64,000 nt of DNA from Chlorokybus atmophyticus (Eukaryota > Plantae > Mesostigma and Chlorokybus algae). Positions 15,143 through 59,380 of the stretch are shown here, piece after piece. The DNA is taken from the NCBI GenBank assembly GCA_009103225.1, contig RHPI01001965.1, positions 201,114-265,113 of the forward strand, written 5' to 3'. Below the pieces are notes generated by a model. It did no database searches. It saw nothing but the letters and a program-made list of their open reading frames with translations, and had not been told where the DNA came from. The position numbers and the translations under genes are program-made. Position 1 is the stretch's first letter, and each line of letters opens with the position of its first letter.

Positions 15143-15156
15143 GGTTATGGGCCCAC
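15143..15156 (+). promoter_or_regulatory. Primer-binding site complementary to the anticodon region of initiator tRNA-Met (half-tRNA priming)
   Basis: GGTTATGGGCCCAC directly after the LTR is the reverse complement of GUGGGCCCAUAACC in plant tRNAi-Met. Confidence 0.9.
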
Positions 15157-15233
15157 ACTAGCGCTAGCATAGCAAGTACAAGTTGGTGTAGCTTGGGGAG
15201 GCGCCGTCTTCATTGCAGGCTAGCAAAGGAAGC

Positions 15234-19082: not shown

Positions 19083-19099
19083 AGATGCTCGCGTGGGAG

Positions 19100-24330: not shown

Positions 24331-27249
24331 GTTGTATATAGGTCAACCTATGTCCGTATATAGGTCAACCTATGTCCTTAATTTATTGCTAATGTACTAT
24401 ATGTTCCATAAAATGGAACATGTAGTACGTTAGCAGTCCATTAAGTTAAGCTCCATCTTATCATAATACGGATAACACATTGCTAAGATTGTAACATGAG
24501 CAGGAGCTAGTAACAAACAATTCAATGCCTGACATGCGCATTGGTACATATACCATTATCATTACCTTTGGTGGCCTCATACATAAACGGTCACTTGCAT
24601 GTACAAGACATATATTCGGTACACAGAGGCCACGTTTTTACATATGCGCATATGAACATGTGATAACATGTGGTGGTGGTGGTATACATGCATATATGTG
24701 CCAATGCGGCATGTCGATGTGCACATGCTCACAAATGCAATCGCTCTCATGCATGCTCGCATAGCCAATGGAACTTAATCCCGCATTGTTTGCCTATGAC
24801 CCTATTGTGCCCCATTTGGTAGGCTCACCAATTGGCTGCATAAAGCCACTCACACTGGTTTATGTGTGCAGCTCGTGTAGATTGGCGCCAGCTGTGGGCC
24901 CCGTATGGAGCGGCCCAAGCAAATATTCTGGCACTTATTTTAGCCAAGCTTAACATGGTATGCTTATTTATACGACCATAAGAAAGTGTGACCGCATGGG
25001 TGACCATAACACCGTCATAATTACTACCGAGCTTACCTCTTCTTCATTATAAAAACCATAAAAAGCACGACTACTTCACACATTTCTTAGTCTTCGCGGG
25101 ATTCTATTTAAGCTAAGCAGTACGCAATTATACAATCAATGTACCGCGTTCATTGTAAGCTTTGCGCATTTTTAACTGTATGCCGCTGCAATTGTGGTCC
25201 CACACTCGCTACCCTGTATGTTGGAATCGACTTACTCACTATTAGAATTGGCCCACTCTTGCAAAAAGTTTGGACGTGGTGCAGAAGAGTACACAGTAGC
25301 AAATCTTTGTGATAAAACACACAATCGCACAAACCATTGTTACCGTTATAAATAATCATATGGCCGTAATACACGGGTCTGCAAATAACTTGCATATGCA
25401 TGATACATGGTTACACTATAGGCTAGCACGCTAATGCTACTGGGCTCTCTAATAGTTAGCAGCCCCAAGATTTTTGTGGACTGCTTGTGAGACCCCATAT
25501 GTTTGCGTTACAATACAGCAAACGTCTTATGACTTGCTGCAATTGAACAATGACCTCAACATAGTAACTGGTGGTATAAATTAACACTTTTTGTGTAAGT
25601 AACACGTTTATAATGCGTGGCAAAGCGGGCTTCAATTCAAGTTTTTGCTTGCGGGCTAGCGGATCTCAAGTGGTTGCAATTTTCGATGATGTGCATATCA
25701 AAGTGCATCTGCCACATTAAATACCATTTCTCGTAACAACTACTGCCCCAAACTAGTGCTGCATGTATTTGCAAGCAAACGCCAAATGATGCGGTACACC
25801 ACTTAATGTCACGCTTTGCAATATTGCCACCTTTAATACTGAAAGGTGTATTACATTATAAGCGCATCATAACCATGTTCTGCTATCATAGCACAACATG
25901 GTGCGCCAGTGACGGTCTATGCTAATCAATGCGAGCTCCGATTTTAAGAGATTTTTTTTGTGAATGAGGTCATGTGTTACTGTGTTTACAACAACCGAGG
26001 TTGTCACCCTGGTGCTTGAAGCACCTGGTGCCATTGGCATTTTACTGCATCAATGACCTTATCATTGTCACATCATCAAGTTTTTGATTTGCACCTGCAA
26101 CTATAACACCTCGTTAAATACGCCACTTTAAATTATACGGGTGGCATAGCGGATCTTTAAGCGCAGCAATACAAAATAATGATGTGATGGGTTCTTACAG
26201 CATGCAACAATGCATACTAAGTATACAAGTAAAGGTATATGCAGTATAAATAACATTCTTATATAAGATGATTGGATTGTATGATATCCACCATGATTAA
26301 TAAATACTTTAGACAATCGCAATCCGATTAAAATTACAACCCTGCTTGCTTGCTTTTGTGGTAATGAGCAATGCCTACAATGTCGAGGCATATTTGCATA
26401 TAACGAGCTATTAATCGCATTTGGCACTAACATCAACTTGTGTATGATTGCTTGGGGTAATCATTGGTGATAATCAATAGAATGTAGCTTGACTTAAACT
26501 TAAATAAAAATTTATTCATCGATCTGTGTTGAACAATCTCTCAGCATGATACACAACTTGTTTCACACGATATGACAACCAAAAACACTTTTTTGCAGTT
26601 GAAGTTAAAGGTTAATTAATATGACTGTCATGATGGCCTGCAATTGTGTACGGATTATTAAAATACCATGTCATGTATACATGTGCTTATTATACGCATT
26701 ATGGACATAGAGATGTGCAACATGAATTACGTTTAGCTTACTTAACATATAATTGTGTTTTATACCTTATAGCAAGTTGATACCACACGCAACACAACAA
26801 TTCAAATATTATGCACTACTGTAACAATACCACTACTTACTTGCTGGTCCGGGCTTGGCAAACCGATGCACAAGCACCAAGGACTTACAGCGGAAGTCTC
26901 AGCAGCACCATGGTGGACGGGAAGTTGCAAAAGCGCACCAAGGGAGGATAACAAAATAAGTTCTATTTTGCTCAGCACAACGCTATCGGGGTCATTGTAA
27001 TGTTCGTAAGTTGTCCCCCGTAACAAGTCCCCCATTTCAAGGTGTTGTCTGAGATCCCCAGCAAAAGTTTACAAGCAACATAGCGATGTTCCGAGTATTG
27101 GATTATGAAGCCAACACTATCATTCACCAGGATTAGCTCAAAGGTTGATTTACTAAAGCAGCTGTTGCAAACGCAAAAAAAGCCCCGCAGAGCTATAGCA
27201 TCAACGAATGCAAGTGTACAGCAACTAGGCTGTCACAGTAGCTACAAGG

Positions 27250-28140
27250 CTGCGCTACCAAAGTAGTGGGCGCCACATCATGCTGAGGGCTTGCGGCGCC
27301 GCAGTAGGCACGCAAGTGCCCCGTTTCTCCATAGTTATAGCAAGTGCAAGAGTCGTGTTGCCCCCCCGTGGAAGCGGCCTAAGACTGCATAGGAGCGGTC
27401 CTGTAGCTGGTATGCCCCGCACCAAATGAGACTGCATAGGATCCACAGTAGCAGGGGGGTACTGGCCCCGCCCCTTGTTGGGAGTGTAGGCCGCCTTTGC
27501 CTTGGGCTTGGGCTGCGCCGCAGCCGCCTCCTGAATTGCCTTTTTAAGGCGCTTTGCCTCTGCATTGTACGTAGCTAGAGGGTCTATCGTGAGCTCCTCC
27601 ACCACCTTCCAACTGTTCTTGTTGGTAATTTCCACATGGTGGAACTGCTGACACACCTCATCCAATGCTAATGCACAGAGCACATCCGAGCAATACTGGT
27701 TGCCGGCATTCATGCAGAGGCTTAGAGCCCCTGGGTTTAGCGCCAAGCGCACCCACATTAACGTTACCAGCTTCCACATGCAAGTGCAAATGCAAACCTG
27801 TTGTACCTTTTACCTTGCTGTGAATAGTCATGATGTATATACAGAGGTGGACATGCAAGGGTGCAGAGGTGGACATGCAAGGGCCCTCCCCCCCACCGGA
27901 TACGGGGAGAGGAGGGATGCAGAACAATGGTATGCAAATACTTGCATGGGTTTTTACATAGATGCCTCTATGTAGCTGGCGAGCCCGCATTTTCGTAAGG
28001 CCAATGATGCACACATGTGCATGTTTGCGTGAGTCAAGTCCGCACCCTCATGCTTGTCCTACATGTGTGCTCGTATAAGTGGCCGTGCTCCACAAACAAT
28101 GAGCCCACCTTTCATGTTTTCATTGCGGCCTTGTAGTAAT
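27250..28140 (-). mobile_element. DIRS-order ORF1 (gag) fragment with two introns
   Basis: Homologous to 37848-38420 and 42790-43420. Exon 3 reads ALDEVCQQFHHVEITNKNSWKVVEELTIDPLATYNAEAKRLKKAI, followed by a decayed Zn knuckle. Confidence 0.85.
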
Positions 28141-28642
28141 AGCCCAGATGCTGTATATGCTGGTTGTGTTGATGGTAATAGCCTATATGGGCCCCGCTCT
28201 ATAAATGAGACATCTCAATTAAATGATTGATGAGTTGTAAAAACACCGTTCTTGTTCACTAACTTACGCTACCGATCCCAGGTGAAACTCGATACAATTA
28301 ACAATATACATCTTAATGACAAAAGTTGCATCATGCTGAGCACATTAAGTTCAGCTTTTGATAGCATTTACAGTGGATATGGACGATGTAATGGCTGCAT
28401 TGTAGAATGAAGCTCTTAATTAATCTCTATAATTGCTAGAACTTTGGTAGTCTTTATAAGAGACATAGTGCTTAAAACCGAGCCCGTGTGTTTTAGTTGT
28501 GGACACCGTGTGAAAAGTAATGGCCGCTATTGCATTGTAGTGCACACCCGCAGCGTGCACTACAACGTGCAAGAATGCAAGCATGCACCCATAATAATAG
28601 CAGCGGTTGTATGCAATTGCATACACCATTACAACAGAGGAC

Positions 28643-29013
28643 TGTTGAAAACTAGTGATGCGCCTAGTGTGTGTGTATTTGCCTCTTACATACAAGTGTG
28701 CACACACTAAGGACAAGTGCAGCAAGCACGCCAACTATAGAGACAATGTGCGACCCACTATATTAAGCAGTATACAGTGTCTTATATACTATGCTACTAA
28801 GCACTAGTCAACTCTAGTCAACTGTGGTAAAAGCCAACACTAGTTAACACTAGTCAATGGTCAAAATCAACGGTCAAAGTCAAAGTTGATCATGGTTAAC
28901 AATAACTCCCGTAACTCTTGTAACTCCCGTAGCTATATTGATTAAGCTGATCGTGCCAACTACATGTAGGCGCCGCCTATACATGTACTTTCGACAAGCT
29001 ATACCATTTAACA
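28643..29013 (-). repeat. Isolated family-B copia LTR
   Basis: Matches 52758-53155 in reverse complement; TG...CA termini; no matching TSD seen. Confidence 0.88.
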
Positions 29014-29324
29014 CATTCACCATTATTAGGGTACACATGAGTTTGCGGACTACACTATAGCTGCTATTGTCCACCTAGTGGATACTGGGGCCACACAAGA
29101 GTGTGTAACACTTCATTCATATGAGCCCACTTAATGTGCTTAATGTAGTTACAAGCTGCGTCTCATGTTGCAGTTGCGTTATGTCAATTCCTACTTGGTG
29201 AACTTACCATTCATTATGAGGATGTACGCATCTCGGACTTGTTATGGTTTAAGAGTTGGGTAACGGACTTGAAGTTGAAATGCCATTAAGTGGACATGTA
29301 CTCCGCCCACCAAGGTTACATTGG

Positions 29325-30310
29325 GTCTCATTAATGGGCAAAGTGTACGACTTTTGCTCGTTGGCATCAGGCTTGAGCACGGCGTGCCTTGTGTTCACCA
29401 AAGTGATAAAGCATTTGGTGCGCAATTATTGTGCACAAGGCATCCGTGCCTTGCCAAATATTGAGGACTTTAAAGGCATTTACTGAACGCTCAAAAGCTG
29501 CGCATGCCTCCACCCTAGCAATGGTGCAAGTGGATGCCACATGGTGCGGAATGATAATGAGCACCGAGGCATGAATGGGGCTCACCCACGTCTTTGTCAT
29601 TTTGAGCATGGCATGAGATATATACGCTAGCATTGTGCGTGTTTTGGGGCTAAAATGTGATGGTTTATTGCGATATCTTTGGTGCGCACATGGTGATAGG
29701 CGCCATGTGCTAGGTATTGGTCGGACCATGTGGCAAGCTACACTTAGTGTTCCCACATTGGTCTTTGTGGTCAAGCATGACATATGAATGTATGGAGCTT
29801 ATGAAAAATGCGCGCCCATGAACTCAAGAGAACTCGTTAATAAGTGATGAGACTGTAGTGCCCATAATGCCTTGGGCACTAGAGGGCACAAGCACTCCTG
29901 TAGTGTGAGTTGTGTGTCACAAACTCCTTATCTGGTCGCTTGAAACCCTAGCAAGGCGGTGCCATTCTTGATGAAGGTGGTAAGTGTGCTATATAATGCA
30001 GGTGTTCAGTAAGCTCAAGCTTTTACAACGATGTCAGCACAGTGAGTGGCGCTATTAACAAGCTGAACACCGAGAAAGCGTGGCTTTTGCACATGCCGTG
30101 GCGGAAGTTCCCATACTTATAGCCTGAAAACCTAGTGCAGACCTTGTGTATAAGCCAGCTGATACCTACACACTTGCACATTGGTGTTGTATTGCACTTG
30201 GGTGATGGGCGTAGCTGCCGTGCTCAAAACCCATAACAACCCCTTAATAATGTAATGACCCCCAGCGACCCCCCAGCATGAGATGTGTGTTGCATATAAC
30301 TTGTGTGGGA
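29325..30310 (+). mobile_element. Internally deleted DIRS-order copy: RT fragment joined to A, spacer and B
   Basis: GKVYDFCSLASGLSTACLVFTKVIKHLV (RT); repeat A ~29790-29985; spacer; B ending ATAACTTGTGTGGGAG at ~30312. Confidence 0.82.
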
Positions 30311-30619
30311 GTTTTTCAAACCCTCCACTTTAACTTCTGATTGTGACGGTGTGCTATTTCGGATAGCCATGCATCCTTTATATTAATTGTGGACTAGGTT
30401 TGTACCATCTCGGCCTCTACAGTCGTGACACTAGCTTCGCGCCTCTTCTTATTAGCTAAAAGCATGGTGTCGTGTAGCTTATTGGCACACCATGCACCTC
30501 ACACACATGCGGTGTATTACTAGCAGCTGCAATGCAACTCATACGCTCATTAACCAAATAGTCACCACGTAAAGAGGCACCCAACCAAGTTATAACCATA
30601 CCACCACCTTCCGGGGCAG

Positions 30620-31040
30620 CAATTAGGCGCTTCCTTTAGTCGATGGCGGGGTTGCGCGTCCAAAGGCAAGGCAGCCCAGCAATGCAATTGAAGCTTTTAC
30701 CTAGCTCAATGCAGCAAGAGGGTAGGCTATCCTTCATCATCCCCATATGGACTTCAAGCTTTTTGCTCAGCTTCATAATGCCGGTCAACACATGGCCATC
30801 CGTGAAAGTCGTGGAGCCGGCATGTGCTCACGAGAGCCACTTATGTTGACACGCAACGTCCCAACTCATGAGATCGTGTTCTGCATCGTTATTCACAAGC
30901 TATTTTTACTCTACCTAAGAACCAAAACCTTCACGCATCATGGTCATCATGTCAGTAGCTGCCTCGCCTCAGCGGGCACACAAACCGTACCATATTACCG
31001 TTACGCACATTCCGCCAATAGTCACCAGTGCAAAGTGTGA
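30620..31040 (-). pseudogene. Relic of a KDZ (Kyakuja-Dileera-Zisupton)-like transposase
   Basis: Broken frames give YGLCAR*G (cf. CARH), MSWDVACQH (cf. YDIACQ) and a downstream GMM...C...G segment in the expected order. Confidence 0.45.
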
Positions 31041-31391
31041 AATTATATCTTGAAGAGCTCAAGCTTGTAGGTGTCCTTCTTTCGCATGTTCAATGGTAGC
31101 AGCCTGGCAGCGGCCTGCCGCACCACCGCGATGAATGCGTGCGCGGTGGGAGAGGCCTGGCCTGCCATGGTATGCGCAGCGTGTATGGCGGGAGATACAT
31201 GTTTCGCAGGTGCCGGGGTGGTGGAATCCACCAACACCTTGGCTAAAAATAGGGCCACTGTGCCAGGGTGCGCCGGCAAGGCAGCCCAAACACGAGGCGT
31301 GCAAAGCTCCACAAAGCAATGCAAGTAGCCCTCATGGCCTCGCAAGGTGCTAGAAGCACGTGATGCCGCGGCTACTGCCGGGTATAAGGTG

Positions 31392-33706
31392 TGTTGAGAA
31401 CTAGTGATGCGCCTAGTGTGTGTGTATATGCCTCTTACATACAAGTGTGCATACACTAAGGATAAGTGCAGCAAGCACACCAACTATAGAGATAATGTGC
31501 GACCCACTGTATTAAGCAGTATACAGTGTCTTATATACTATGCTACTAAGTACTAGTCAACTCAAGTCAACTCTAGTCAAAGTCAACACTAGTCAATGGT
31601 CGAAGTCAACGACTAAAGTCAAAGTTGACCATGGTTGACCATAACTGCCGTAACTGCCGTCCTTCTCCTAACTCTGGTAACTCCCGTATCTATAAAGGTT
31701 AAGCTGATCGTACCAACTACATGTAGGCGCCACCTATACATGTACTTTCAACAAGCTATAACATTTAACACTCCCATGCGAGCAGCTTGACCTTGAACTC
31801 CAAGTTCTTCTCGCAAGCTTACCCACATTAACTTACTCCATTGAACACTCCTACGTATGTGTTGCTCCCACGGACTTGATGCTTGTCTCCGTGACACCAT
31901 CCTTCTCCTCGTGTTGCCAGCACAACTACAAGGTTCCAATACTCCTTGTTTCCTCCTCGTAGTTGTCGCATCAAGTTCCACCACGCCACGCCTGACCTTG
32001 CTCAGGTGATTTTGAAGACTCCCTCGATGGCAAACTATGCTATAATCTATACTGAGTTCTCTACCTTACCAGTGCTGTACCAGAGTGTAGGCCGTGCAAG
32101 GGTTGAGCAGACCCTTTTACCAAGGAAAGTACCCCTCCCATCTCCTGTTCGCTAGCTATACAACTCAGTCCTTGCATGCCAATCAGTTGAAGTCTTCAAT
32201 ATAGTACCGCACACCTGTGCTACCAAAAAAACAACTCCACAGCAATGCAACCTCTAGTGTATGCAGCTCAACACCAGCAACTACTCATAGGCTAGCAGTA
32301 ACTCTCACAGACCTTTGTGTCTGCGATCTCCGTCTACGCATGTCCTTCACGCGCCCCTGCAGTGGGAGAGGACGGACGAACACCATCCACTGCAACTCCT
32401 TGAGGTCCTCACCAGTGCTAGAAAGCAATCGCCATCATGGCGTGCTCCTCCTTGGTTGCCTCATCGTGGATCCTCTTCTGGCACTCACGAATGAAGTGGC
32501 CCTTCATCTTGCAGTAGTGACACTCTTTGTCACGTGATGGCTTCCCGCCACCTGCTGTGCTCCTGCTTCGTGTGTGTTGAGAAGATGAGGCAGCAAGTGC
32601 GATAGGTTCTCCACCATTCTCTATCTCCTAAACATCCAACTTGCCTTCCACAACTAGCAGCTTAGGCACTACATCAGCAAACTTCAAAACCACATTTGAG
32701 GACTCCAACACAGTCACTAGCATAGCAAAGCTCTTTCCTAAGCCAGCTAAGACTGCCCACATCACCTCCTCTTCCTTCACATCGTGGCCCATTGCTGCAA
32801 GTTCTTGCCAAAGCTCCCTTGCACGCGAGATGTACTTCTGATTGGCTCTTTGTGCTCCATCTTTAGAAGTGTCAGCTTGCGTCTCAGCTGCAACTTGCGC
32901 GAGTTGCTGTTGGCCTTGAAGAGGGTATCGAAGACCTCGCACGCCTCACGTCCAGTCTTGCAATCCGCAACAAGAGGGAGATAAAAGTCTTTGACGTGCA
33001 AGCCTACCAGCGCAAAAGTTGATTGTGAGTTCTTTGTGAGGTACCAGTGTCACTTGTTCTTGGCCGCAATAATGTGGAGGAAGTGGGATCGATAAAACTC
33101 CAGAGCTTCTTGCGGATTAGCACCAACTTCATCTGCAGCGACCATGAAGCGTAGTTGTGCAAATCAAGGGACTCAATGGGCATCCTATTTGTGTCAGCAA
33201 TTGCTTGCTACACAATAGTAGAACTCACCCTCTCCCCAAGAACACTCTACTAGTAGGCGCCTATGCTCAACACTTTCTCTCACTAGCACAAGCGATCACA
33301 CAAGCGAGTGTGGGCCCATAACCTGTTGAGAACTAGTGATGCGCCTAGTGTGTGTGTATTTGCCTCTTACATACAAGTGTGCACACACTAAGGACAACAA
33401 GTGCAGCAAGCACGCCAACTATAAAGACAATGTGCGACCCACTGTATTAAGCAGTATACAGTATCTTATATACTATGCTACTAAGCACTAGTCAACTCTA
33501 GTCAACTCTGGTCAAAGTCAATATTAGTCAACACTAATCAATGGTCAAAGTCAACGGTTAAAGTCAAAGATGACCATGGTTGACCGTAACTGCCGTAACT
33601 CTCCAAATGCTCGTAACTCCCGTAATTATAAAGGTTAACCTGATCGTATCAACTACATGTAGGCGCCACCTATACATGTACTTTCAACAAGCTATAACAT
33701 TTAATA
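31392..33706 (-). mobile_element. Non-autonomous copia, family B copy 1, inserted in the DIRS YR gene
   Basis: LTRs 33324-33706 and 31392-31770; PBS 33310-33323; decayed gag; PPT; TSD AGGTG/GGGTG (4 of 5 match); no IN or RT. Confidence 0.93.
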
Positions 33707-35454
33707 GGGTGCGCAGGCGCTCAATCTTATAGTCTGCGGGGACATTGGGCATCATCGATTGTAAGCTACGCTCGACAGCATCTGTACACATCATGTGTCA
33801 ATGGCCAAGACGCAAGTCAATTCGCGATGCCCACATGCGAGTGTTTGGCAAGCCCGCTTGGAGTTTCGTGACTTGTGGGCTAGGCCACAAGCAGGCTGGG
33901 TTGTTAGGCAGGCATACAACATCTGTATTAAATGGTGCCCACACTCCCGGGCAGAGAACGGGCCACCAATTTTTTTTTGGGGGGGGGGGTGGTCCATTTA
34001 AGTACGATAAGGCACATGCGAGCCTTGCAGTTGCAAGCATGTTGCAAGACAATACCAACACGGTGTGGAGGGGGGGGGGCGGGGGGGCGCATTAGTTGTT
34101 GCAGCCAGCCTCCAATCCTAGTGAAAGGCATTGCCAAACGAGCCTGTACATGGCAATGCCGAGTTGAAGGCCACACAATGCTGGCATTTGTGGCAAAGCG
34201 GTCCACACTTAAGGGGCCCCACTTGCGGGCGAGCGGGCCCAAGGTGTTTTGAGAGTCCAACCAATCCGATCTGGTGCCCTAGAGAGCGCGTCCACCTCCT
34301 CAATAAGCTCGCGTGGCAACCACTTTATGTGCAAGCAGATGCAATGGCGGTGGCAATGTAATAACGCAATATGCACTTGCTGCACGTGTGCGGCCTCACT
34401 GCCCCTTTTGCGCATGATGTAGTACACATTGCGGGCATCACCATAGCACAGCACAGTCCGCCCATATAGCTCCGCCTCTACAGTTAACATTGCTCGCTCA
34501 AGGCCTAAAAGCTCATATTATGTTAATAAAGTTAGGCACTCCTCATGTGTAAATGTGCCTTTTGCTACTGGGGTAGCCATGCCATGGCGCACTAGTCCCC
34601 AACCAGTGCCGCTAGCGTCCACATAATACACAATGTTCGGCCGTACTGTGGGCCATATAGGCGCAACATAAAGCTCCTTAATGTGGTCCCGCAGCGTGAG
34701 CTCATCAATTTCCGCCTTGTGTAGCACCATGTGTGAGTTCGGAGTGGCGCGTCTCAACCAAGCGGCATGTATGCCAAGTCATGAGTTTGATGGCAGGGCC
34801 CAACACCATGAACATGGATTGCAGCTTGCTATAAACGCCAGCAACTTCACTAGCACATGGCGCCTATTACCACATGCGCGCTGCAAGTATCCAAGCAAAC
34901 CATTGCGCTTCTTGCCGGGGATACGAAAAGTGCCAGTGTGTGTATCCCGCACAAAGCCGAGGCAAATGATGACTCTGCTGAGCACCACCTGTGCATTAGT
35001 GTCAATCACCAGCCCGCACCATGCTGCATCTGCTTGCACAATGAGTAGAGTGGAGGCATGCTCAGCCTTGGAGCGAGCAGCAATGGGAAGTCGTCAATGT
35101 ATGGCAATACACGCACGCCCTGCACTTGCCAACGGTGCACCAATTGCTTCATCACTTTTGTGAACACAAAGCACGCCATGCTCAACCCAAATGGTAACGA
35201 GCAGAAGTTGTACACTTTTCCAGCGAATGAGCACCCCAAGTACTCTAAGATGCGTGGTGTATGTCCACATGATAATAACCGGACTTCAAATTCGCGGAGA
35301 ACAACCAGTCCTCGGGCTGCAGTAAGTTTGGGATGCTGAGCACATCCTCATACTTGAATGGCGTGTTCACCAAGTCGGAGTTGACAGCGCGCAAGTTCAT
35401 GACGAGGCACAGCTTGTGGCCATCATTAATCACATTGAGTGAGCTCATAAAGGG

Positions 35455-35699
35455 NNNNNNNNNNNNNNNNNNNNNNNNNNNNNNNNNNNNNNNNNNNNNN
35501 NNNNNNNNNNNNNNNNNNNNNNNNNNNNNNNNNNNNNNNNNNNNNNNNNNNNNNNNNNNNNNNNNNNNNNNNNNNNNNNNNNNNNNNNNNNNNNNNNNNN
35601 NNNNNNNNNNNNNNNNNNNNNNNNNNNNNNNNNNNNNNNNNNNNNNNNNNNNNNNNNNNNNNNNNNNNNNNNNNNNNNNNNNNNNNNNNNNNNNNNNNN
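35455..35699. other. Assembly gap inside the DIRS RT
   Basis: N run. Confidence 0.99.
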
Positions 35700-36691
35700 G
35701 GAGGGGGCGGGGGGGGACACTCTTGTGCGGCCCCACTATGCACTAGGTTGGCGATAGCAGCCGAGTGAAGTCCGCAAACTCATGCACACCCTCGTAGCTG
35801 GTGAATGCCCATTCGGGGGGAGGGTCAGCCGCCCATGGTAGCTTATACCCGTACTCCACTCAGGACAGGACCATAGTAGAGTTGTAAAATTGCCGCCATG
35901 CTGATAAGGCCTTTCGTAAGCGGTGTGTTATGTATGGACCTTTCACAACCAAGTTGCTAGGTGTGTGTGCATTTTATGCATTTTGCTTTGAAACTCATGG
36001 TGTTTCTTGTAGTCCTCCACCAACTTTTACTCAATCAAAGTGTGGTTAAGGGCCACCGTGCACACTGCCTCCGTTTTTACCCTTCATATGTGCAACAAGT
36101 GAGTGCAAGCACTCCCATATTGTAACGGTCACCACTTTTGTAAACAATGCCTAATTAGGACGTTCAAGGTGTTGACAGAAAGCGTTGCTCAGCACTCAAA
36201 CCGAACAGCGGCTGCAAGTAATAGGCAGTTGCATCTAGCCGAGGCCTTCCATGAGCCCAATAATGTGCAAAAATAGTAAACCGTGTTTAAATCTCACATT
36301 TATTAGCTCTGCACAAGCGTCATTATGTCACAATAATAAATTCAAAGTCTCATGCCTTTTGGAGGTAATCTAAGACTTTAAAATGAATTCATAGGCATTA
36401 CATGCGCACAAGTATTTAGCTACTAGACGGTTATGATACAGCTATGGGGCTTTGCTACCAAACTAGTGGCCGCCACGGCCTACAAAGGGCTTACGATAAT
36501 ACGCACGCAGGTGCCCTGGCTTCCCGTGATTGTAGCAAGTGCGGGAGTTACATTGACCCCCAGTGGAAGCGGCCTGAGGCTGCATAGGAGTGGTCCTTCA
36601 ATTGGTAACTGGGTCCCGCATCATATGCATACAACCCAGAGTAAAAGGGGGGGTACTAGCCCCGCCCCTTGTTGGGATGGTAGGCAGGCTT

Positions 36692-39600
36692 TATTGAGAT
36701 TGCATAGTAGCAACAATGACAAACACAAGTGTGGCGCTGACAATAGAGCAGAGTGGATCTTATTGTCTTGCACAACATACAGTGTCTTATATAGTACACT
36801 AGTGAGCGCTAGTCAACACTAGTCAACGCTAGTCAAAGTCAACACTAGTCAACACTAGTCAACGGTCAACATTAAAGATCAAAGTCAACGTTGACCATAG
36901 TGGACTGTAACTCCTATAACGGCAGCTGACCGTAACTCCCAAGGTGAAGATGATCGTAGAAGTTTAGCTAAGGCGCCTAGCAAAGTACCTTTAACACTCC
37001 CACGCGAGCATCTTTAGCCTTCAACTCCGAGCTCCAGGCAACAAGTCTGGAACTTGGTTGATGGTAGTGGCTTGGTCATGCAGTCCGCGAGCATGTCCTC
37101 CGTGCTACAGTACTGAACTCCACCTCACCGCGTGCAACTCTCTCTCTCACCAGGTGGTGCATGATGTCGATGTGCTTCGACCTGGGAGATGTGATAGGGT
37201 GCATGCTCAACTTGAGCGCTCCTTGGTTGTCACACATGATAGTGACCCGGCTCAGTGCATGTCCCAAGTAAGTGACCAACTTGCGAAGCCATAGTGCTTC
37301 TTTCACCGCAGATGAAGCCGCCATGTACTCGGCCTCAGTGGTTGATGCAGCAACAGTGGGCTGTAGTCGGCTGTTCCAGCTGACGACGCCTCCTCCCATC
37401 AGGAAAGTGTCCTGTGGTAGACCTCCTCGTGTCGAGGTCCCCCGCATATTCTGCATCAGAATAACCCTGTAATGTAATGTCTTTTGTCCTCCCCAAAGTG
37501 ATACCCACGTCCAAGGTGCTGCCAAGGTAGCGAAGAACTCCTTTTGCCGCCTTCCAGTGCTCCATGGTTGGTGCTGACATGTGTCTCGCCAAGATTCCAC
37601 GGCTTGTGCGATGTCGGGCCTCGTGCTGATGGACAAGTAGATGAGGCTCCCAACCAGCTCACCGTATGAATGTGTAGCCTTGTCAAGCACGGTGGTAGTG
37701 TCCTGCCTTGAGTAGATGTACTCCCACGCTCAGTGGTGTTGCCTTGCCCTTGGCGTCTTGCAACTTGAACTTCTTGAGTACATTCAGGATCATCTGCTTC
37801 TTGGTGATCTTGATTGTCCTTGCAACTCTGTCTCTGGTGATGACAATCCTTGATTGCCTTCTTAAGGCGCTTCGCCTCGGCGTCATCCGCGGCCAGAGGA
37901 TGTCCCTTGAGCTCCTCCATCACTTTCCAGTTGTGTTTGTTGGCTACTTCTAAGTAGTGAAACTGTTTGAATACCTCCTCAAACGCTGCGCACAAAGCAC
38001 ATGTAAGCAACACGAGTTGCATCAGCACACTGGCTCAAAGCCATAGGGTCCAGCGCCAAGCGCACCCACATCCCACCCTCAACTTTACATACCACATGCC
38101 CTGCGGATTCGGATGCATATGATGTGCCCTGTTGTGCTTGTTACCTTGCTGTGAGGTAGTCATAATGTGAATACAGGGGTGAGCATGCAAAGATGTTAAG
38201 TGCGGGCCCTCCCCCCCCGCCGGACATGGGGGGAGGAGGGATGCGGAACAAATGCATCTCGTGCATCTATGTTGATCAGGGAAGCGCCTTTATAAGGCCC
38301 ATAGCGCACGCATGTGCAAGTGGGCATGGACCAAGTCCGCACCCACATGATGATGTTTGTATGGACGCTCGTGCACATGACGCTACAAAGAATGAGCCCA
38401 CCTTTGATGTTCTCCCGGCGACCATGAGCGAAGTGAAGATCGAGAAAGTGAGCGGGCACACGGTCGAAGGAGCTCGCCGCCGCGCCGATGTGAGCCGCCA
38501 CATCCACATGTTGCCGAGCCCGCTTCTTCAAGTTCTCCTTCCAAGGGGTCGCGGGCTCGGTGTAGCGGTTGCACATCGCCGCCACCCGAGCATTAGGAGT
38601 GTAGGAGTCGCTCTCGCGGCGAAAGATGCTCACAAGTAGTGGATGGTTGGGCTCGTCCATGGGTTCATCAAGAGGGATGGCGGGCGCTTTTCCACGCTTG
38701 AGGCGGATGTTTTCCGCTTCCAACTCCTCCAACCTCCTCGCCATGGCCTCCGTGGGTGTGGTGGAGGCGTTGGAAACCGGGCTTGCCGCCCTCTTTCTAC
38801 GCTTGTAAGTGACCGCGGGCGGGTCGTCGTCGTCATGATCATCCTCATCATCACCATCACCATCCTTGTTCACCTCCTCCCCATCCACCACGAGGGGGTG
38901 CTTTCTTTTCTCCTCACTCTCCGCTCGCCTCTCCTCCTCCTCACTGAAGGTCTGGCAACACGGACTTCTCGCCTTTGCCAAGCGGTTGGAGGCCATGAGA
39001 GCCGCCGCCGCCGAGGCTTCCACGTCCTCGCCTTGCCCTTGGGCGCTTGCTTGCGCCCGCGTCAACCTCTTGTCCATGGTGAAGGTCCCCCTTCCCCCTC
39101 ACCACACTCGCCACCCTCGCCAAGGATGGCGCCGCCGTGCTAGGGTTTCAAGCGACTAGATAAGGAGCTTGTGGCTCACACTCACGCCTAGTGAGTGCTT
39201 GTGCCCCCTAGTGCCCGAGGCACTAGGGGCACAAGAGTCTCATAACTCATTAACGAGTTCTTGAGTTCATGGGCGCGCATTTCATGCGCTTCATGAACTC
39301 ATATACTTCTTGAGTACATTCAGGTTCATCTGCTTCTTGGTGATCTCGATTGTCCTTGCAACTCTGTCTCTGGTGATGACAATGCCGAGAAACAAGCGTG
39401 CATCGCCAAGATCTCGAATCTCAAAAGCAGATTGCAGTGTCACCTTGATATGTGACGTTGCAACAGTGTCGTTTGATGCCAAGATAATGTCGTCCACGTA
39501 CACCAGCAACCACACTTGGCCGTATTCACTGATGAAGAGCCCGGGATCTGATGATGACTGCTGAACGCCCATTTCTTTAGCTCCTTGCTGAGCCGAATGG

Positions 39601-42600
39601 GCCAGACTCTTGGCGCTTGCTTAAGCCCATAAAGAGCTTTATATAGCAAGCAAGCCTTTCCTGAGCCTCCCTCCTCGTAACCTTGAGGCTGCTGCACGTA
39701 GATCTGCTCATCCAACTCTCCATAGAGAAAAGCAGTCTTCACGTCCAGGTGGTGCAGCTCCAAGTCCTCTACAGCAACCTTTGCAAGCAGCGCCCTGAAG
39801 GTTGTGTGCTTACTGGCAGGCGCAAACACCTCCTTGTCGTCAAAGCCCTCCTCCTGTAGGAAGCCCTTTGCCACAAGTCGCGCCTTGTAGCGCTCGATGT
39901 TGCCCTTGCCGTCACGCTTCATCTTGTACACCCACTTGACAGGTATAGGCTTGACGCCTTGTGGAACCTGCTCAAGTACTCAAGTCTTGTTGGCGTGTAG
40001 CGAAGCAATCTCCTCATCCATGGCCTTGCGCCACAACTCAGCATCTGGAGCTGTATTGGCCTCATGGTAAGTGCTTAGCTCCTTCTCCTCAGTGGTTTCA
40101 GCGCTCATGGCCTGGAACCTTTGGTAGAATTGAGGTGGCGCTCTGTTTCTCACAGGTGAGCGCCTCTCCTGCTCATCCACAGGTGCAATCTCGTCCTCCT
40201 CAAGGTGTGGCGCACCATTAAGAACCTTTATGTTGGCAGATGGTGTGGTGATGACCTCTGGCTCCTCAGCAAGGTCATTGTTCACAGGCGTAGAAGGTGT
40301 TGTTGGTGAAGTCGCCACCATCTTCTCGTCGAAGACAACATCCCTTCGAACCACAATCTTCTTGCGGTCCTCAAGCAAGATCCTGTATGCCTTGGAGTTT
40401 GGCTCGTACCCGACAAAGACACCCATCTCCCTCACGTTCTCAAGCTTCCTTCTCAGCTGCTTGGGGATGTGTGGATACGCCTTGGCTCCAAACACACGCA
40501 TGTGCGTCACATCAGGCTTCGCACCGTAGAACAACTCCCACGGGGTCTTGGCTTTATTGCTCGTAGGTGACCTGTTGCGGATGTAATTGGCCGTGACAAA
40601 TGCCTCAGCCCACAAAGCTTTGTCCAGCTTTGTATTTATAAGCATGGCACGCACGCGCTCCACAAGCGTGCGGTTGAGACGCTCTGCAGCACCGTTTTGC
40701 TCAGGGGTGTAGGGTGCAGTAGTCTCATGCTTGATGCCATGCTCATTCAGGTAGCTCTTCAAGGTGTGGTTGAGATACTCAGAGCCTTGATCACTTCTCA
40801 ACGCCAACACCTTTGTCTTTGCTTGTGTAGCCAGCTGAGTGAGTGTCCTCTTGACTACATCAGCAACATCCGACTTCGCAGCAACTGGAATAATAGCAGA
40901 CAGCTTGCTGAAGTCATCTATGAAAGTGGCAACGTACCAACTCCCTCCAGTGGACGCAACTGGCATGGGACCGCACACATCCATGTGCACGAGATGCAAG
41001 GGTGCTGTACTGGTGCGGGAAGAGGTAGGAAAAGGCTGCCTAGGCATCTTGCTCAGCACGCACGTCTCGCATAGATCATCTTTTACTGCGTTGATGTCCT
41101 CCGCTTTGATGTTGATCCCATTCACCATGTCCTCAGCCACCAGTCTTGCCAGGTAGTCCCATTCAAGTCTTCGGTGCCAATGACGAGCTGTGTCCGATGC
41201 AGTGACTATCGCAGACAACGCAGGCTGCCGATCCAGTGTGATGCAGTACAAGCTCTCTCGCAATGTGCCCTCCACAACAACAATGTTGTTCACCTTGACT
41301 TGACACTTTTGAGCATTGAAGTTAACTTTGGCGCCTGCGCTTGTAGCTCTTCGAACGGAGAACCGGCTGGAAGCTAATCCTGGCACGTGGATCACCTCTT
41401 TCAGGGCCACTTCATGTGTAGCGCCCGCCACCACAGTGTGTAGGATGACGGTGCCCACTCCCACAGCTTGCAAGTGCAGCTTGTTGCCAAAGCTCACTTT
41501 CACACCAACAGCATCGCTCAGAGCATGATATTCATGGAACTCATATCTGTGTGGGGTCATATGCTGTGTGCACGCAAAATCAAACAACCAAGCGCTTTCG
41601 ATAGCAGTGGTGCTAGCAGCAAGTGCTACAGCTTGTCTATCAGAACCTTGTTTCTGTTGCTGATCGCGCTTCAACTTTCGACTGTCCTTCTTTAGGTGTC
41701 CCTTCTTGTCGCAGTAGTGGCAGGTACGCGTCTCCTTCTTCCCACCACCGTTATTGTTGTTGGGGCGTGAATTGGATTGTGCCGCGAATGCCACAGCTTC
41801 AGCCTCGTCCTGGCGTCCTGGTGAAGTGGATGCTCGTTGCTCGACTTGAAGTAGGCGTGGGGTGATGGCCTCGAGGGAGCTCCTCACTGGTTGACTCCAT
41901 AATGGTGACAGTCATCTCGAACTCCTTGGGCAAGCCAGCAAGGATGACCCAGACCACCTCCACCTCCTTCACTTCGTGTCCAATGGCAAGCAAGTCGTCC
42001 CACAGCTGCCTGGCTTGTGAGATGAACTTGATGACAGGTTCAGCAACATCCTTCCTCAAAGCATTCATCTGCTTCCTCAACTGCAACTTCTTAGCATTGT
42101 TTTTAGCCTTATAAACCTCAGCAAACTTCTGCCACAACTCTCTAGCAGACTTGCAACGTGCAACAAGCGCTAAGTGATGCTGTACCACTGTCAACGCAAG
42201 TGCCTGATTGGACTTTTTCTTCATGGGTGCGTCCTCTAAGTCGAGAGGGCGCTCCGTGGGATCCACCACCGACCATAAATCCTTGTGCATGAGTAGCATC
42301 TGCATCCGGATGCTCCATGTCCCATAATTGTCGAGGTTCAATGGCTCGATGTTGACCTTATCATAGCTGGTCGCCATGCTTCCTTTGCTAGTCTGCAATG
42401 AAGACGGCGCCTCCCCAAGCTACATTAACTTGTACTTGCTATACTAGCGCTAGTGTGGGCCCATAACCTATTGAGATTGCACAGTAGCAACAACGACAAA
42501 AGTGTGGCGTTGACAATTAAGCAGAGTGGATCTTACTGTATTGCACAACATACAGTGTCTTATATGGTACACTAGTGAGTGCTAGTCAACACAAGTCAAC

Positions 42601-42788
42601 GCTAGTCAAAGTCAACACTAGTCAACACTAATCAACGGTCAAAGTCAAAGTCAATGGTCAAAGTCAAAGGTTAAAGTTAACGTTGACCATAGTGGACTAT
42701 AACTCTCATATCGGCAGTTGACCGTAACTCCCAAGGTGAAGATGATCATAGAAGTTTAGCTAAGGCGCCTAGCAAAGTACCTTCAACA
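36692..42788 (-). mobile_element. Full-length copia, family A copy 2, inserted in DIRS ORF1 and carrying a nested DIRS piece
   Basis: LTRs 42469-42788 and 36692-36996; perfect TSD GGCTT (36687-36691 and 42789-42793); PBS 42455-42468; frameshifted gag-pol colinear with A1; YVDD intact near 39490. Confidence 0.96.
37848..39304 (-). mobile_element. 5' piece of a DIRS-order element (A1 plus ORF1) nested in the RT of copia A2
   Basis: A1 39304-39101; ATG at 39077; exons 39077-38402, 38128-38093, 37985-37848 splice into one open frame; flanked by a 79-bp duplication of copia sequence. Confidence 0.92.
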
Positions 42789-43182
42789 GGCTTTACCTTG
42801 GGCTTGGGCTGCGCCGCAACCACATCCTTCAACGCCTTTCAGTAGCCGCTTTGCCTCATCATCAACCATTGTGAGGGGGTTGCGCACCAGCTCGTCCACA
42901 ACCTTCTAATCATGCTCGTTAGCCACTTCCACATAGTGGAATTGCTTACACACCTCATCAAATGCTGCGCACAGAGCACACATGAGCAACACGCATTGCA
43001 TGTTCATGCGGGCAAAGCCAATGAGTTTAGCGCCAAGCGCACCCCAAATCCATTCCCATACCTATCATGTGCATATGCGCATGCAAATGCGGATATTATG
43101 CCCTGTTGTGCTCGTTCCCTTACTGTGGGGTAGTCATATGTGAATATAGGGTGAGCGTACAATGGTGTTAAGTATGGGCCCC

Positions 43183-43183
<1 letters not shown>

Positions 43184-43277
<94 letters not shown>
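43184..43277. repeat. Poly-C tract in intron 1 of element D (length unreliable, next to an N)
   Basis: Homopolymer run; shorter C/G runs occur at the same intron position in other copies. Confidence 0.9.
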
Positions 43278-44354
43278 NTAGACATCGGGCTAGCGCCTTC
43301 ATAAGGCCCATCATGAACGCATGTGCAAGTGTATGTGGGCCTAATCTGCACCCACATATTCATGTACCTACATGCGCGTGTATGTGGCTTAACAAAGAAT
43401 GAGCCCACCTTTCATGATAACTTTGCGGCCTTTAACAAAGTGGGGGTCTTCGGCGAGGTGGGCGGGCACACGATCAAAGGAGGATGCCGCCGAGCAGAGC
43501 AGAGCCGCAACCTTGAGGTGTTATCGAGCCCGCTTTTTCAAGTCCTTCCTTCAAGGGGTGACGGGCTCGCTGAAGCGGGTGGCCATGGCTCCCACTCGAG
43601 CGTTGGGGTTGGTGGAGTCGCCGCTATCACAACAAAAGATGCTCACAAGTAAGGGGTGGTTGGGCTCGTCAATGGGCTCATTACACGGGATGGAGGGCGC
43701 CTTCTCACGCTTGAGGCGCATATTGTCCGCGTTCAACCTCCACATCATTGCCTCTGTGGGTGTCATGGGTGGGGTAGAAGCATTGGAGAGCAGGCTGGCC
43801 TCCCTCTTCCCACGCTTGTAAGTGACGAAGGGCGGGTTCACATCGTCCTCATCCTCCTCACCACCACCATTACTCTCCTTGTTCACCTCCTCCTCTCCCC
43901 TCCCCACGGGGGGGGCGCACCTCTCCCTCCTCCCTCGTCACTCTCCTCTCCTCCTCCTCACTCAAAGTGTGGCGATACGAACTCTTAGCCCGCGACAAGC
44001 GATTGGCGGATACCATCGCCGCCGCGGCTGTGGCCGCCACCTCCATCATTTTGGGCACTTGCTTGTGACCATGTAACCATGGTACAGGTCCTCCGCTCAC
44101 ACCTCCTCACCACACTCGCCACCCACGCAAAGGGTGGCGCCGCCGTGCCAGGGTTTCAAGTGACTAGATGAGGAGCATGTGACTCATAACTCACTCTATA
44201 GAGTGCTTGTGCCCCCAAGTGCCTAGGGCACTAGGGGCACAAGAGTCTCATAACTCATTAACGAAATTTCGAGCTCATGAGAGCGCATTTTATGCGCTTC
44301 ATGAAGTCATATATCGTTATGTGAAGCTATAGGTTGCTGTTATGTTCCAATTTA

Positions 44355-44726
44355 TGTTAAATGTTACTAATTGTTGAATGTACATGTATGAGCGGCGCCA
44401 ACATGTAGTTGGTACGAACAGCCTAACCTTCATAGTTACGGGAGTTACGAGAGTTATGAGAGTTACGGCAATTATGGTCAATTGTGGTCAACTTTGATGT
44501 TGACCGTTAACTTTGACCGCTAATTGGTGTTGATTTCTACTAGAGTTGACTAGAGTTAATTAGTACTTAGTAGCATCGTATATGAGACACTGATTACTGC
44601 TTAATACAAAGGGTCGCATATTGTCTCGATAGTTGGCGTGCTTGCTGCACTTGTCCTTAGTGTGTGCACGCTTGTATGTAAGAGGCACATATACACACAC
44701 ACTAGATGCATTACTAGTTCTCACTA
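44355..44726 (+). repeat. Diverged solo LTR, copia family B-like
   Basis: TGTTAAATGTTA start, GAGTTAC and TTGAC arrays, AGACACTG, CTAGTTCTCA end; flanks ATTTA/GTTTG could be a decayed TSD. Confidence 0.85.
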
Positions 44727-53900: not shown

Positions 53901-54911
53901 CTTAAAAGATTGCGCCATGGGTCCGTCCTTTTCATGTGGTGTGTAATAAGTTACGGCATAGTGGGAGGTTGCACGGGTAGTTGGAAGCTACTATTAGCCG
54001 TGAGCACAAGTATTTGCCAACTATACAAGTATACTATAAGAGCTTGTTCTCTTTAATGTATGCTGGCTCTACGTGCACGGTCTAGGAAGTTGGCAGTGGA
54101 AGTTTGGAACCTTGATGTAGCATTGGCCGAAGCCTTAGCAAAATGTGACAAGTATTGTGTTGAAGCAGCTTAACCACGAGTTGCTTGCTGACAAGCATTT
54201 CCAAGAAAAGATTATGTATTGTAAGCGCAAAAAGTGGTTGGCTGATGGTTTGATTGTGAAAAAGACAAATGCGGAGCTTGCCGAAGGTGCAAAGTGTGCG
54301 TCCTTTTGCGTATACCACAGCATGTTTTAGGTTGTAAACGGGGTAGTGAGTGTAATGGTGCCAACCTGTTGATAGAAGTGGAAGAAGTTGTTATACCTTT
54401 AAATATTGTTAAAAATGCTTTGTATGAGGTGTACACGGATGCATATGCATAAATACAAGTGGGTGGTGACATTTGGACTATGGCCAATGGCAATAAGAGT
54501 GAGCATTGCAAGCTTGCAAGTGTAGCTCAACAACATCAACAACGTCCCGAAGAGCACTGAGCACTGATCACTGGCAGCAACCGATTGCAGCATCATTGCG
54601 AGCATTATTGGATTGGTGTGCAAGAGAGATTTTGCATGGTTGAGATTTTAGTTTAGCCCACTCGGCTAGTTTGCATTCCTAATAAAAGGTGGGGCCCTGT
54701 GTGTGGCCCGGTCGGCTAAGACCTTTTTTGTTCACCTCCCCCTGCGCCATGCAGTGGCCTGTCCCTAGCTCCCTTGTGCTTGGCGCGCGATTGCCTTCGT
54801 CCCTAGCTTTTCTCTTTCGACGAGCAAGTGAGCTACTGAGGCGGCTTCCCTGACCGCACCGGAGCAGTGCCAAAATTAGGCTTTTTTGTACTACAATTGA
54901 TTGTAGTGCGT

Positions 54912-55407
54912 CATATGAGTTCATGAAGCGCATGAAATGCGCGCCCATGAACTCAAGATCTCGTTAATGAGTTATGAGACTCTTGTGCCCTTCGTGCCTC
55001 GGGCACTTGGGGGCACAAGCACTCACTAGATGTGAATTGTGAGTCACGACTCCTTATCTAGTCGCTTGAAACCCTAGCTTAAAGGCGCCATCCTTGGCGA
55101 CGGTGGCGAGGGTGGTATGCTTTGCAAGTGTACACGCTCCACAAGCTTCAACCTCGGCGTTGGCAGCAGTGGCGCCATCAACGAGTCAAAAACTGAAGAA
55201 ACGCGTGACTTTCACACCTGGCGTGAATATGTAGGTCCCGTAGTTATAGCCTAGCGCCCTAGTGCAGAATTGTATATAGATCAGCCTATATCTGTACACT
55301 TGTACACTTGTATAGTAATGCACTTGGGTGCTGGGCATAGCCACCGTGCTATTGACCCATAGCGACCCCCCAGCACAAGCTGTGTCGCATATAACTTGTG
55401 TGTGAGT
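54912..55407 (+). mobile_element. Solo-type DIRS remnant: A, spacer, B only
   Basis: A 54912-55116; spacer; B 55349-55407; no B1 or YR upstream. Confidence 0.85.
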
Positions 55408-55847
55408 GTAGTGGGACTCGAACTCAGGTCGCTAGGGCCCGACATTTTGTTCAGAATCCGGATTAGCCCACTTGGCTAGCCTCGCACGAGCTATTGCGGC
55501 GGCTATTAGGTATGCTTGGCGTGCAGTTGCCTCCGCTATTGACTGTTTTACAACGAGCGTATGGATTATTGCGGCGGCTTCCCGTACTGCGCCGAAGTAG
55601 TGCCATAACATTGGGCTCTTCTTACTGCTGTTATTCACCGTGCGTCCGTTAAGACTTAAACTCAAGTCACTAGGGCCTAACCTTTTGCGCCAGAGCAGTG
55701 CCAACAAATAAACTCTTGCTTCAATACCATTTTCTTATGCTTTTGAACTAGCCTACTCGGCTAGCCTTGTGCAATGCTACCCCAGTGGGGTAATCCGAAT
55801 CTTCAACCGAAGGTCGGGGCCTTAGCGACCCAAGTTCAAGTCACCAA

Positions 55848-58800: not shown

Positions 58801-59380
58801 AAGCACGCCGTGCTCAACCCAAAGGGCAACGCGCAAAAGTTGTACACTTTGCCCGCAAACGAGAACCCCAAGTAGCCCCAAAAGGCGGGGTAAATGTCCA
58901 CATAATGGTAGCCAAAATTCAAGTCCATGAAAAACAACCGGTCCTCAAGTTGCAACAAGTCCGGGATGCTGCGTACATCCTCATACTTGAACGGCGTGTG
59001 CACCTTGTAGGAATTGACATAGCGCAAGTTCATAGTGAGGCGCAACTCGCGGCCGTCATCGACCACATTGAGTGGGCTCACCACGAGGGGGGTTGTCACA
59101 GACTCTTGTGCGGCCCCACTATGCACTAGGTTGGTAATGATAGCTGTAGCGAGGCCTGCAAACTCGTGCACACCCTTGTGGGTGGTGAATGCCCATGGTG
59201 GTGGTGGGTTTTAAGCCCATGGTAGCTTGTACCCATACTCCACCCATGAGAGCACCATAGTAGACTCCCAAAATTCACGCCATGCTGGCAGGGCATCACG
59301 CAGTTGATAACGCATGTAGGGCCCCTTGTCGGTGAGGTTGGCAGGGACGCGAGCAAACTCATGGTGCTTCATTTAGTCAT
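55848..59380 (-). mobile_element. DIRS-order (PAT-like) element, 5'-truncated: RT, RH, Dam-like, YR, B1-A2-spacer-B2
   Basis: RT 59171-58389 (ALPFGLSTACFVFAKV, YIDD); RH; Dam-like VDRFA...FNS...NNWCHPP...LIVPEW (~57900-57470); YR 57385-~56420 (frameshifted); B1 56397-56337; A2 56336-56131; B2 55908-55848. Confidence 0.95.

Follow-up and report, generated by a model that had tools for sequence, protein, structure and literature searches.

A DIRS-order retrotransposon family whose gag-like gene is broken by a conserved, apparently spliceosomal intron

Because retroelements copy themselves from RNA, an intron that is spliced out of their transcripts is expected to be lost, so an element that appears to keep one raises the question of how the RNA that is translated and the RNA that is copied are held apart. 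A preliminary description of a 64,000-nucleotide stretch of the Chlorokybus atmophyticus genome (hereafter, the window) proposed such a case, namely, a reverse-transcribing element in which ORF1 retains two spliceosomal introns, with the unspliced RNA serving as the template and the spliced RNA encoding Gag. Our analysis supports this interpretation in part. We favor, with a probability of about 0.58, a DIRS-order family with 205-bp inverted terminal repeats in which the gag-like ORF1 is broken by a single conserved, phase-1 GT...AG sequence of approximately 416-444 nt that is spliced.

Within the window, a blastn comparison revealed sequences of this kind at three places only, and the relationship among the three diverged copies of ORF1 is one of true homology, with 51-58% of the columns of the interruption invariant in all three. 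The features to which we refer are the following.

37848..39305, minus strand: copy A, a 1458-bp 5' DIRS fragment with the repeat (39305-39101), an open exon 1 (39077-38402, 225 codons), the interruption (38401-37986, 416 nt) and part of exon 3 (37985-37848, 46 codons).
27240..28150, minus strand: copy B, an internal fragment with ~14 codons from the end of exon 1, followed by the interruption (28108-27668, 441 nt) and by exon 3 as far as ORF1 extends.
42790..44313, minus strand: copy C, the 5' part of the sole full-length element, with the 205-bp left repeat (44313-44109), a decayed exon 1 (ATG at 44080, to 43409), the interruption (43408-42965, 444 nt) and the first part of exon 3 (42964-42790).
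29782..36692, minus strand: element D, which continues copy C and comprises the ORF1 tail with its knuckle (36692-36440), RT (35937-35087), RNase H/MT (34973-34248), a foreign LTR-element insertion (33704-31391), the recombinase N-terminal domain (31483-31043) and the right inverted terminal repeat (29988-29782).
36677..42789, minus strand: a Copia element within ORF1 exon 3 of element C/D, with a 5-bp target duplication (AAGCC); it carries copy A.
54906..59333, minus strand: the paralogous reference element, with RT, RNase H, Dam-like MT, recombinase (N-terminal domain 57385-56936, catalytic remnant 56880-56428) and 3' repeats.
38093..38128 (A), 27797-27768 (B) and 43102-43062 (C), minus strand: the middle segment of 36, 30 and 41 nt, respectively, sizes that agree with the preliminary description; doubtful as an exon.

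Copy C and element D belong to one element, which the Copia insertion has divided in two, as shown by the AAGCC duplication and by the match of D to copy B (27498-27240). The physical linkage of ORF1 to the reverse transcriptase, RNase H and tyrosine recombinase that had been attributed to element D stands, but D is the same element as copy C rather than a separate one. The inserted Copia, which is 94-95% identical to an intact Copia at 14819-19439 and encodes Copia gag, integrase and related Pfam domains, harbors copy A between the two arms of a 79-bp duplication of Copia sequence (corresponding to 18243-18321 of the intact Copia). None of the copies in the window is intact. Exon 1 of copy C is disrupted by frameshifts and by two in-frame stops, and exon 3 of this copy by a further stop (43553-43551, 43523-43521 and 42908-42906); the length of the first of the two introns proposed for copy C is unreliable because it holds a poly-G run of ~110 bases that includes an N (43278). 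The ORF1 of copy B contains a degenerate CCHC-type knuckle, and no RT was found downstream of it; apart from the ~14 codons in this copy, exon 1 is present in copies A and C only. Between ORF1 and the RT lies another non-coding spacer, ~550 nt long. The RT of element D includes an assembly gap (35455-35699), with the nearest intron ~2.3 kb upstream of it; the paralogous sequence 58930-59240 aligns to both flanks of this gap with zero bases in between, so the flanks are collinear and the gap hides few bases, if any. With the 245 N in the gap, the two RT frames of element D lie one base apart.

The family is a DIRS-order, that is, tyrosine-recombinase, retrotransposon. Pfam and tblastn searches yielded an RT, an RNase H, a Dam-like methyltransferase and a tyrosine recombinase, a domain set that differs from that of a Penelope-like element, with its PLE-type RT, GIY-YIG endonuclease and pseudo-LTRs. 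In the paralogous element, the RT is followed by the RNase H and the Dam-like methyltransferase, with an E-value of 6e-12 for RVT_1 and of 2e-6 for the Dam family, the latter at 27.9 bits, just below the 28.1 cut-off; the RNase H-methyltransferase region of a relative, for which tblastn gave E 8e-40, has a match in this element too. The recombinase is of the tyrosine type and not a DDE integrase: the recombinases of the relatives contain the catalytic domain typical of DIRS and match the window at 56880-56428 (E 2e-6) and 23460-23888 (E 7e-9) in tblastn searches. Element D itself retains only the N-terminal domain of the recombinase; a comparison of this domain with PDB sequences produced chance matches only, and no Pfam domain was detected in the decayed recombinase ORFs. 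The terminal repeats are also of the inverted, split kind with an internal copy: the 205-bp repeat is located at the left end of copies A and C, in inverted orientation at the right ends 29782-29988 and 54913-55116, and once internally at 56131-56336. The same gene set (gag, RT-RNase H-MT and tyrosine recombinase), together with terminal repeats, is found in Dictyostelium DIRS-1 and related DIRS elements.

The sequence that breaks ORF1 looks like a retained spliceosomal intron. When the minus strands of the three copies were read and aligned, every intron boundary that had been proposed was found in place: in copy A, AAG/GT at 38402/38401, AG/G at 38129/38128, G/GT at 38093/38092 and AG/C at 37986/37985; in copy B, the intervals 28108-27798 and 27767-27668; and in copy C, 43408-43103 and 43061-42965. 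None of the three copies departs from the outer GT and AG, and the donor is flanked by some of the best-conserved blocks of the region (12 of 15 columns invariant on each side). In copy A, the frame of exon 1 is uninterrupted from its ATG (39077) to a phase-1 end, and exon 3 begins in the same phase, so that removal of the interruption restores one reading frame, as judged by coordinate arithmetic with the exons handled separately. Read-through past the donor encounters a stop after 68, 6 and 16 codons in the three copies, and therefore, there is no conserved coding tail beyond the donor. The outer acceptor is preceded by a T-rich tract and reads GCAG, with a possible branch-point motif of the yUnAy type in copies A and C that is absent in B; the donor, GTGGGC, matches the general consensus weakly. 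T makes up 25% of the interruption and 15-19% of the exons. Models of catalytic RNAs (group II and other self-splicing introns) had no Rfam match at E-values up to 1 across 27000-44500, and the predicted folding of the interruption is modest (z = -2.35). A candidate ORF inside the interruption was rejected: its apparent peptide similarity is not accompanied by a third-position excess, and copy B contains a stop.

The position of the interruption within gag is defined by homology on one side only. The exon 3 block is the C-terminal half of a DIRS gag: it aligns to residues ~141-215 of the continuous, 271-301-aa gag of the relatives (blastp E 2e-4; hhalign E 1.2e-5). In these elements, the nearest relatives found, gag is one uninterrupted ORF, unlike in the present family, so the interruption has to be bypassed, for which splicing is the simplest way. 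For exon 1, a word search was empty, an exhaustive HMMER search of 1.84 billion proteins returned a single repetitive, spurious match, and the comparison with the N-terminal half of the relatives' gag was not significant (E 0.17); given this lack of a detectable relative, the assignment of exon 1 to the same protein as exon 3 is inferred from phase and position. The 46 residues of exon 3 likewise had no match in the word search, protein atlas scores (0.82 or lower) were at noise level, and no Pfam domain was detected in ORF1. An AlphaFold model of a relative's gag places the position equivalent to the intron in a predicted helix but, with a mean pLDDT of 52, is too uncertain to use.

Comparison of the copies indicates that constraint of different kinds acts on the exons and on the interruption. 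The differences between copies A and C in exon 1 are distributed 31/26/56 over the three codon positions (p 0.001), and the three pairwise comparisons of exon 3 give 13/4/21 (p 0.003), 12/8/31 (p 1e-4) and 16/9/20 (p 0.13, not significant); such periodicity is absent from the interruption. Hence, selection on the protein was acting on the blocks on both sides at a time when the interruption was already in place. The interruption differs between copies at 0.23-0.31 of its positions, compared with 0.44-0.69 of third codon positions (Fisher p 0.04, 4e-9 and 0.09) and, being more conserved than these, it probably carries a cis-acting function. A search of public runs yielded a single run (X1), of unknown type and in contig form, and no RNA run; X1 contains the unspliced form only, with no intronless copy among 80 of its contigs. 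Contigs of paralogues harbor deletions corresponding to 38064-38204 and 38548-38613, neither of them at a splice site.

Whether the interruption is one intron or two hinges on the middle segment. The proposal of two introns flanking a true coding micro-exon of 30-36 nt draws on the inner AG (ACAACAG/G), which is invariant in all three copies, on the GGTA at the inner donor of each, and on the fact that the segment is stop-free and a multiple of three in copies A and B. However, the encoded peptide differs between these copies (GHIICIRIRRAC in A versus GLHLHLHVEA in B), the segment is 41 nt long in copy C and missing altogether from the paralogous contig that lacks 38064-38204, and the inner acceptor, without a yUnAy-type motif or a pyrimidine tract, is preceded by an A-rich stretch. 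Furthermore, with both outer junctions in phase 1, a single intron keeps the frame as well as two, that is, when the middle segment is skipped. We therefore consider the two-intron arrangement unsupported and unlikely; the 30-41-nt segment is at most an optional, alternative exon.

Two further explanations dispense with splicing. Under the first, somewhat less likely still, the unspliced ORF1 comprises two cistrons, one for an orphan N-terminal protein and the other for a C-terminal half-gag with the knuckle, and the conserved spacer is an internal promoter or an internal ribosome entry element serving the second of them. This would fit the constraint on the spacer, the lack of homology between exon 1 and the N-terminus of the relatives' gag, the in-frame ATG that every copy has 13-17 codons before exon 3, and the non-coding spacer before the RT, given which the family needs some way to express internal ORFs anyway. 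These ATGs, however, occupy non-homologous positions, in a region where frame-shifting indels set copy B apart from A and C; the putative first cistron has no conserved stop; the relatives produce gag from one ORF; and the match of phases and the conserved GT and AG at the exact edges of the coding constraint would have to be a coincidence. The other explanation, which we regard as highly improbable, is that the interruption goes back to an ancient, disabling insertion; the lineage would be dead and non-autonomous and mobilized in trans by other elements, the GT and AG would be incidental, and an introner-type transposon would be a possible source. All three copies are indeed truncated or decayed, and transposons that generate introns when they insert are known from algae as well as other lineages (PMC12130899). 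Nevertheless, codon-position constraint on both flanks persisted during the divergence of the interruption-bearing copies, which implies that the blocks were still expressed, and neither a search of the window, where the sequence of the interruption occurs nowhere else, nor its contig depth, which is no higher than that of the exons, shows the many copies expected of an introner. Moreover, an introner origin would still yield a functioning intron. A single spliced intron in gag thus remains our preferred reading.

Retention of an intron by a spliced retrotransposon is not new, and the notion that Penelope-like elements are the exception is not borne out, given that Ogre, BARE1, copia and CRR are also spliced retrotransposons that retain introns (PMC3735527). 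According to work cited in PMC3735527 (reference 20), genomic copies of Ogre (Ty3/gypsy, legumes) keep a spliceosomal intron, the translatable message requires splicing and the unspliced RNA is the template. Ogre, however, is an LTR/integrase element with the intron between ORFs and with splicing shown experimentally, whereas in the DIRS-order family described here the interruption is inside gag and we infer splicing. In BARE1 and Drosophila copia (Ty1/copia), a spliced sub-genomic RNA yields Gag, the unspliced RNA is replicated, and spliced DNA copies are absent from the genome (PMC3735527); in these elements, optional splicing removes pol and raises the Gag output, and gag is readable without splicing, whereas here gag is unreadable unless the interruption is removed. 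Penelope-like elements retain introns after retrotransposition, and in Penelope and Chlamys-3, the intron overlaps the internal promoter (PMC8557442), but these elements represent another RT clade and possess a GIY-YIG endonuclease, pseudo-LTRs and a 5' UTR intron, all absent here. Among DIRS elements, replication in Dictyostelium is able to carry an intron; a natural intron is not mentioned in the overview papers PMC3266345 and PMC3783388.

On our preferred reading, the host spliceosome would take the interruption out of part of the transcripts, yielding the mRNA for full-length Gag, while the unspliced RNA would be reverse-transcribed, such that the intron would be inherited by every new copy. 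Candidate cis signals within the interruption are a mark of the genomic RNA or an internal promoter, and such a signal would account for the failure of spliced copies to spread. By analogy with the retroviral packaging signal, which lies downstream of the major splice donor, it is possible, albeit doubtful, that the gag intron is a switch between messenger and genomic RNA, with its conserved blocks marking the RNA for reverse transcription, so that only intron-containing RNA would be copied. If so, the family would offer the first example of a natural, obligatory intron of this sort in a tyrosine-recombinase retrotransposon.

A retained intron forces an element to keep the RNA that is translated apart from the RNA that is copied. 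How this is achieved is understood for retroviruses and a small number of LTR elements, and the replication cycle of DIRS elements is poorly known. On the practical side, ORF-based annotation tools would call such a family dead, on account of the broken gag, even if it were active. An obligatory, sequence-constrained gag intron would provide DIRS biology with a natural marker of the pool of RNA that is reverse-transcribed.

The window is made up of transposable elements nested in one another. Self-comparison and Pfam scans delineate a Copia family, one member of which (14819-19439) is intact, and a DIRS-order family in which a Dam-like methyltransferase domain comes after a reverse transcriptase (RT; RVT_1, E 6e-12). 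The RT relatives on public contigs, 43-53% identical to the RT of the window, have a tyrosine recombinase whose catalytic domain is of textbook DIRS type and has matches in the window at 56880-56428 and at 23460-23888, and a 205-bp repeat forms the left end of the element, recurs inverted at the right end and has one internal copy. The RT, the Dam-like methyltransferase, the recombinase matches of the relatives and the terminal repeats therefore establish membership in the DIRS order. The window also contains an apparently young gypsy-type element with an open 883-aa gag-protease ORF (48059-50710) and two CCHC knuckles. In one related DIRS element, gag is preceded at a distance of 257 nt by an additional ORF of 121 aa (L002 1183-1548, equivalent to L003 671-1036), which weakly matches the SAM domain and is missing from the other relatives.

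The best reading of the interrupted, gag-like ORF1 of this family, as judged from the sequence, is that the gag of a DIRS element contains a retained intron. Three diverged copies of ORF1 bear on this.

Copies of ORF1 in the window
Copy A, 39305 to 37848, minus strand: 1458-bp 5' fragment inside the Copia element that splits C and D
Copy B, 28150 to 27240, minus strand: internal fragment, not followed by an RT
Copy C, 44313 to 42790, minus strand: 5' part of the same element as D, the RT-bearing stretch

Copy C and element D comprise a single element split within ORF1 by the Copia insertion, which duplicated 5 bp (AAGCC); with the Copia taken out, the C and D flanks align base for base with copy B, which physically links ORF1 to the RT, the RNase H/methyltransferase region and the N-terminal domain of the recombinase. 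The linkage proposed in the preliminary description is thus borne out, with the recombinase represented by its N-terminal domain only; its catalytic part is not detectable in element D. D contains a further, foreign insertion, an LTR element (33704-31391), and ends at the inverted repeat 29988-29782. The assembly gap at 35455-35699 falls within the RT of D, but is irrelevant to the intron question: a paralogue (58930-59240) runs unbroken across it, aligning to both flanks with zero residues between, so the flanks are collinear, with probably very little missing, at a C-run. At 245 N, which is only the estimated gap length, the RT frames on the two sides differ by one base. Copy A begins exactly where the terminal repeat does, breaks off partway through exon 3 and lies between the two copies of a 79-bp Copia duplication; with its flanks (37769-39383), it is a chimeric insertion in sense orientation within the Copia. 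This structure would result if the RT switched templates from Copia to DIRS RNA and then returned, or if an incomplete linear DIRS cDNA was captured at a break, and by either route the source is an intron-containing DIRS nucleic acid.

The donor and acceptor positions and the middle-segment lengths (36, 30 and 41 nt) originally proposed for copies A, B and C are all correct. In copy A, exon 1 consists of 225 open codons from the ATG at 39077, and the single span from the outer donor to the outer acceptor is 416 nt (38401 to 37986), compared to 441 in B and 444 in C. In C, about 110 bases of poly-G (43190-43290), including an N at 43278, take the place of the C-run/G-run hairpin common to A and B (38240-38207 in A); this run has the look of an artefact of assembly or sequencing, which makes the intron length in C unreliable. 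Reading through the donor reaches a stop after 68 (A), 6 (C) or 16 (B) codons, and accordingly there is no conserved coding tail.

In both flanking blocks, differences between copies fall mainly at third codon positions.

Differences by codon position (first/second/third)
Exon 1, A-C: 31/26/56 over 156 codons, p 0.001
Exon 3, A-B: 13/4/21, p 0.003
Exon 3, A-C: 12/8/31, p 1e-4
Exon 3, B-C: 16/9/20, p 0.13

There is no such periodicity within the interruption. Since the interruption is common to all three copies, protein-level constraint acted while it was present, and because of this, a dead lineage with a broken gag appears unlikely.

The related DIRS elements encode gag in a single uninterrupted ORF (271-301 aa), which ends with a canonical CCHC knuckle. 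Exon 3 aligns to residues ~141-215 of these proteins (blastp E 2e-4; profile comparison E 1.2e-5, probability 81%) and, as in the relatives, a basic region and a motif resembling a knuckle come after it, so exon 3 alone is half a gag. Protein homologue searches detected no relative of exon 1 anywhere, and its alignment with the N-terminal half of gag in the relatives, though collinear, is not significant (E 0.17); its position and phase and the conserved GT and AG suggest that exon 1 supplies the missing half. In the gag-end knuckle (27300-27350; 36500-36545), the second Cys of CX2CX4HX4C is replaced by Tyr in B and by His in D. A non-coding spacer of ~550 nt (35937-36450) separates the gag end from the start of the RT ORF, compared to 280-540 nt in the relatives (L001 7458-8001, L002 2620-2899, L007 7600-8001), and a further splice there is possible.

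The preliminary description envisaged two introns around a coding micro-exon. That portion of the proposal fares less well than the retained intron itself: the reading frame is in phase 1 at both the end of exon 1 and the start of exon 3, so removal of one intron restores the frame as well as removal of two, and a single intron appears more likely. In favour of the micro-exon, the inner AG is invariant and the segment length is divisible by three in A as well as in B, but the encoded peptide is not conserved, the segment is 41 nt long in C, and the sequence before its upstream acceptor is A-rich, whereas the outer acceptor has a T-rich tract and a GCAG end. Moreover, 38064-38204, 141 bases that include the micro-exon and both inner splice sites, is absent from one paralogous contig of X1, the single public sequencing run found; the ends of this deletion (AC..CG) are not splice sites. 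The micro-exon thus seems at best optional.

The interruption (37986-38401; 27668-28108; 42965-43408) is more conserved than the third codon positions of the flanking exons: pairwise divergence is 0.23-0.31 in its alignable parts, compared to 0.44-0.69 at third positions of exon 3 (Fisher p 0.04, 4e-9 and 0.09) and 0.36 at those of exon 1. Its T content is 25%, against 15-19% in the exons. Near-invariant blocks include 30 bases around the donor (38412-38383), 38067-38052, and 38170-38129 before the inner acceptor. Together, the low divergence and these blocks suggest that the interruption probably carries a cis-acting function; retroviruses and Penelope/Chlamys elements (PMC8557442) offer the models for the two obvious candidates, a signal of the packaging type and an internal promoter.

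The assembled contigs of X1, a run of unknown type, cover the interruption in unspliced form and contain no joint at any proposed splice site, although a negative result from contigs is no proof of absence. They include no genomic copy that lacks the intron, which weakly fits the retained-intron model. With a probability of about 0.6, the outer sites would be real splice sites.

Retention of introns in retrotransposons is not without parallel. Ogre RNA is spliced while genomic copies keep the intron, and the same holds for env-bearing gypsy elements, BARE1, copia and CRR (PMC3735527); Penelope-like elements retain introns as well (PMC8557442). In the literature searched, with its partial coverage, no natural DIRS intron was found, and two DIRS overviews are silent on introns. 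In Dictyostelium DIRS-1, an artificial intron near the 5' end is partly unspliced in cDNA (PMC7192593), which demonstrates that an intron so placed can pass through replication. An intron kept within DIRS gag would introduce no new principle, retrotransposons with retained introns being already known.
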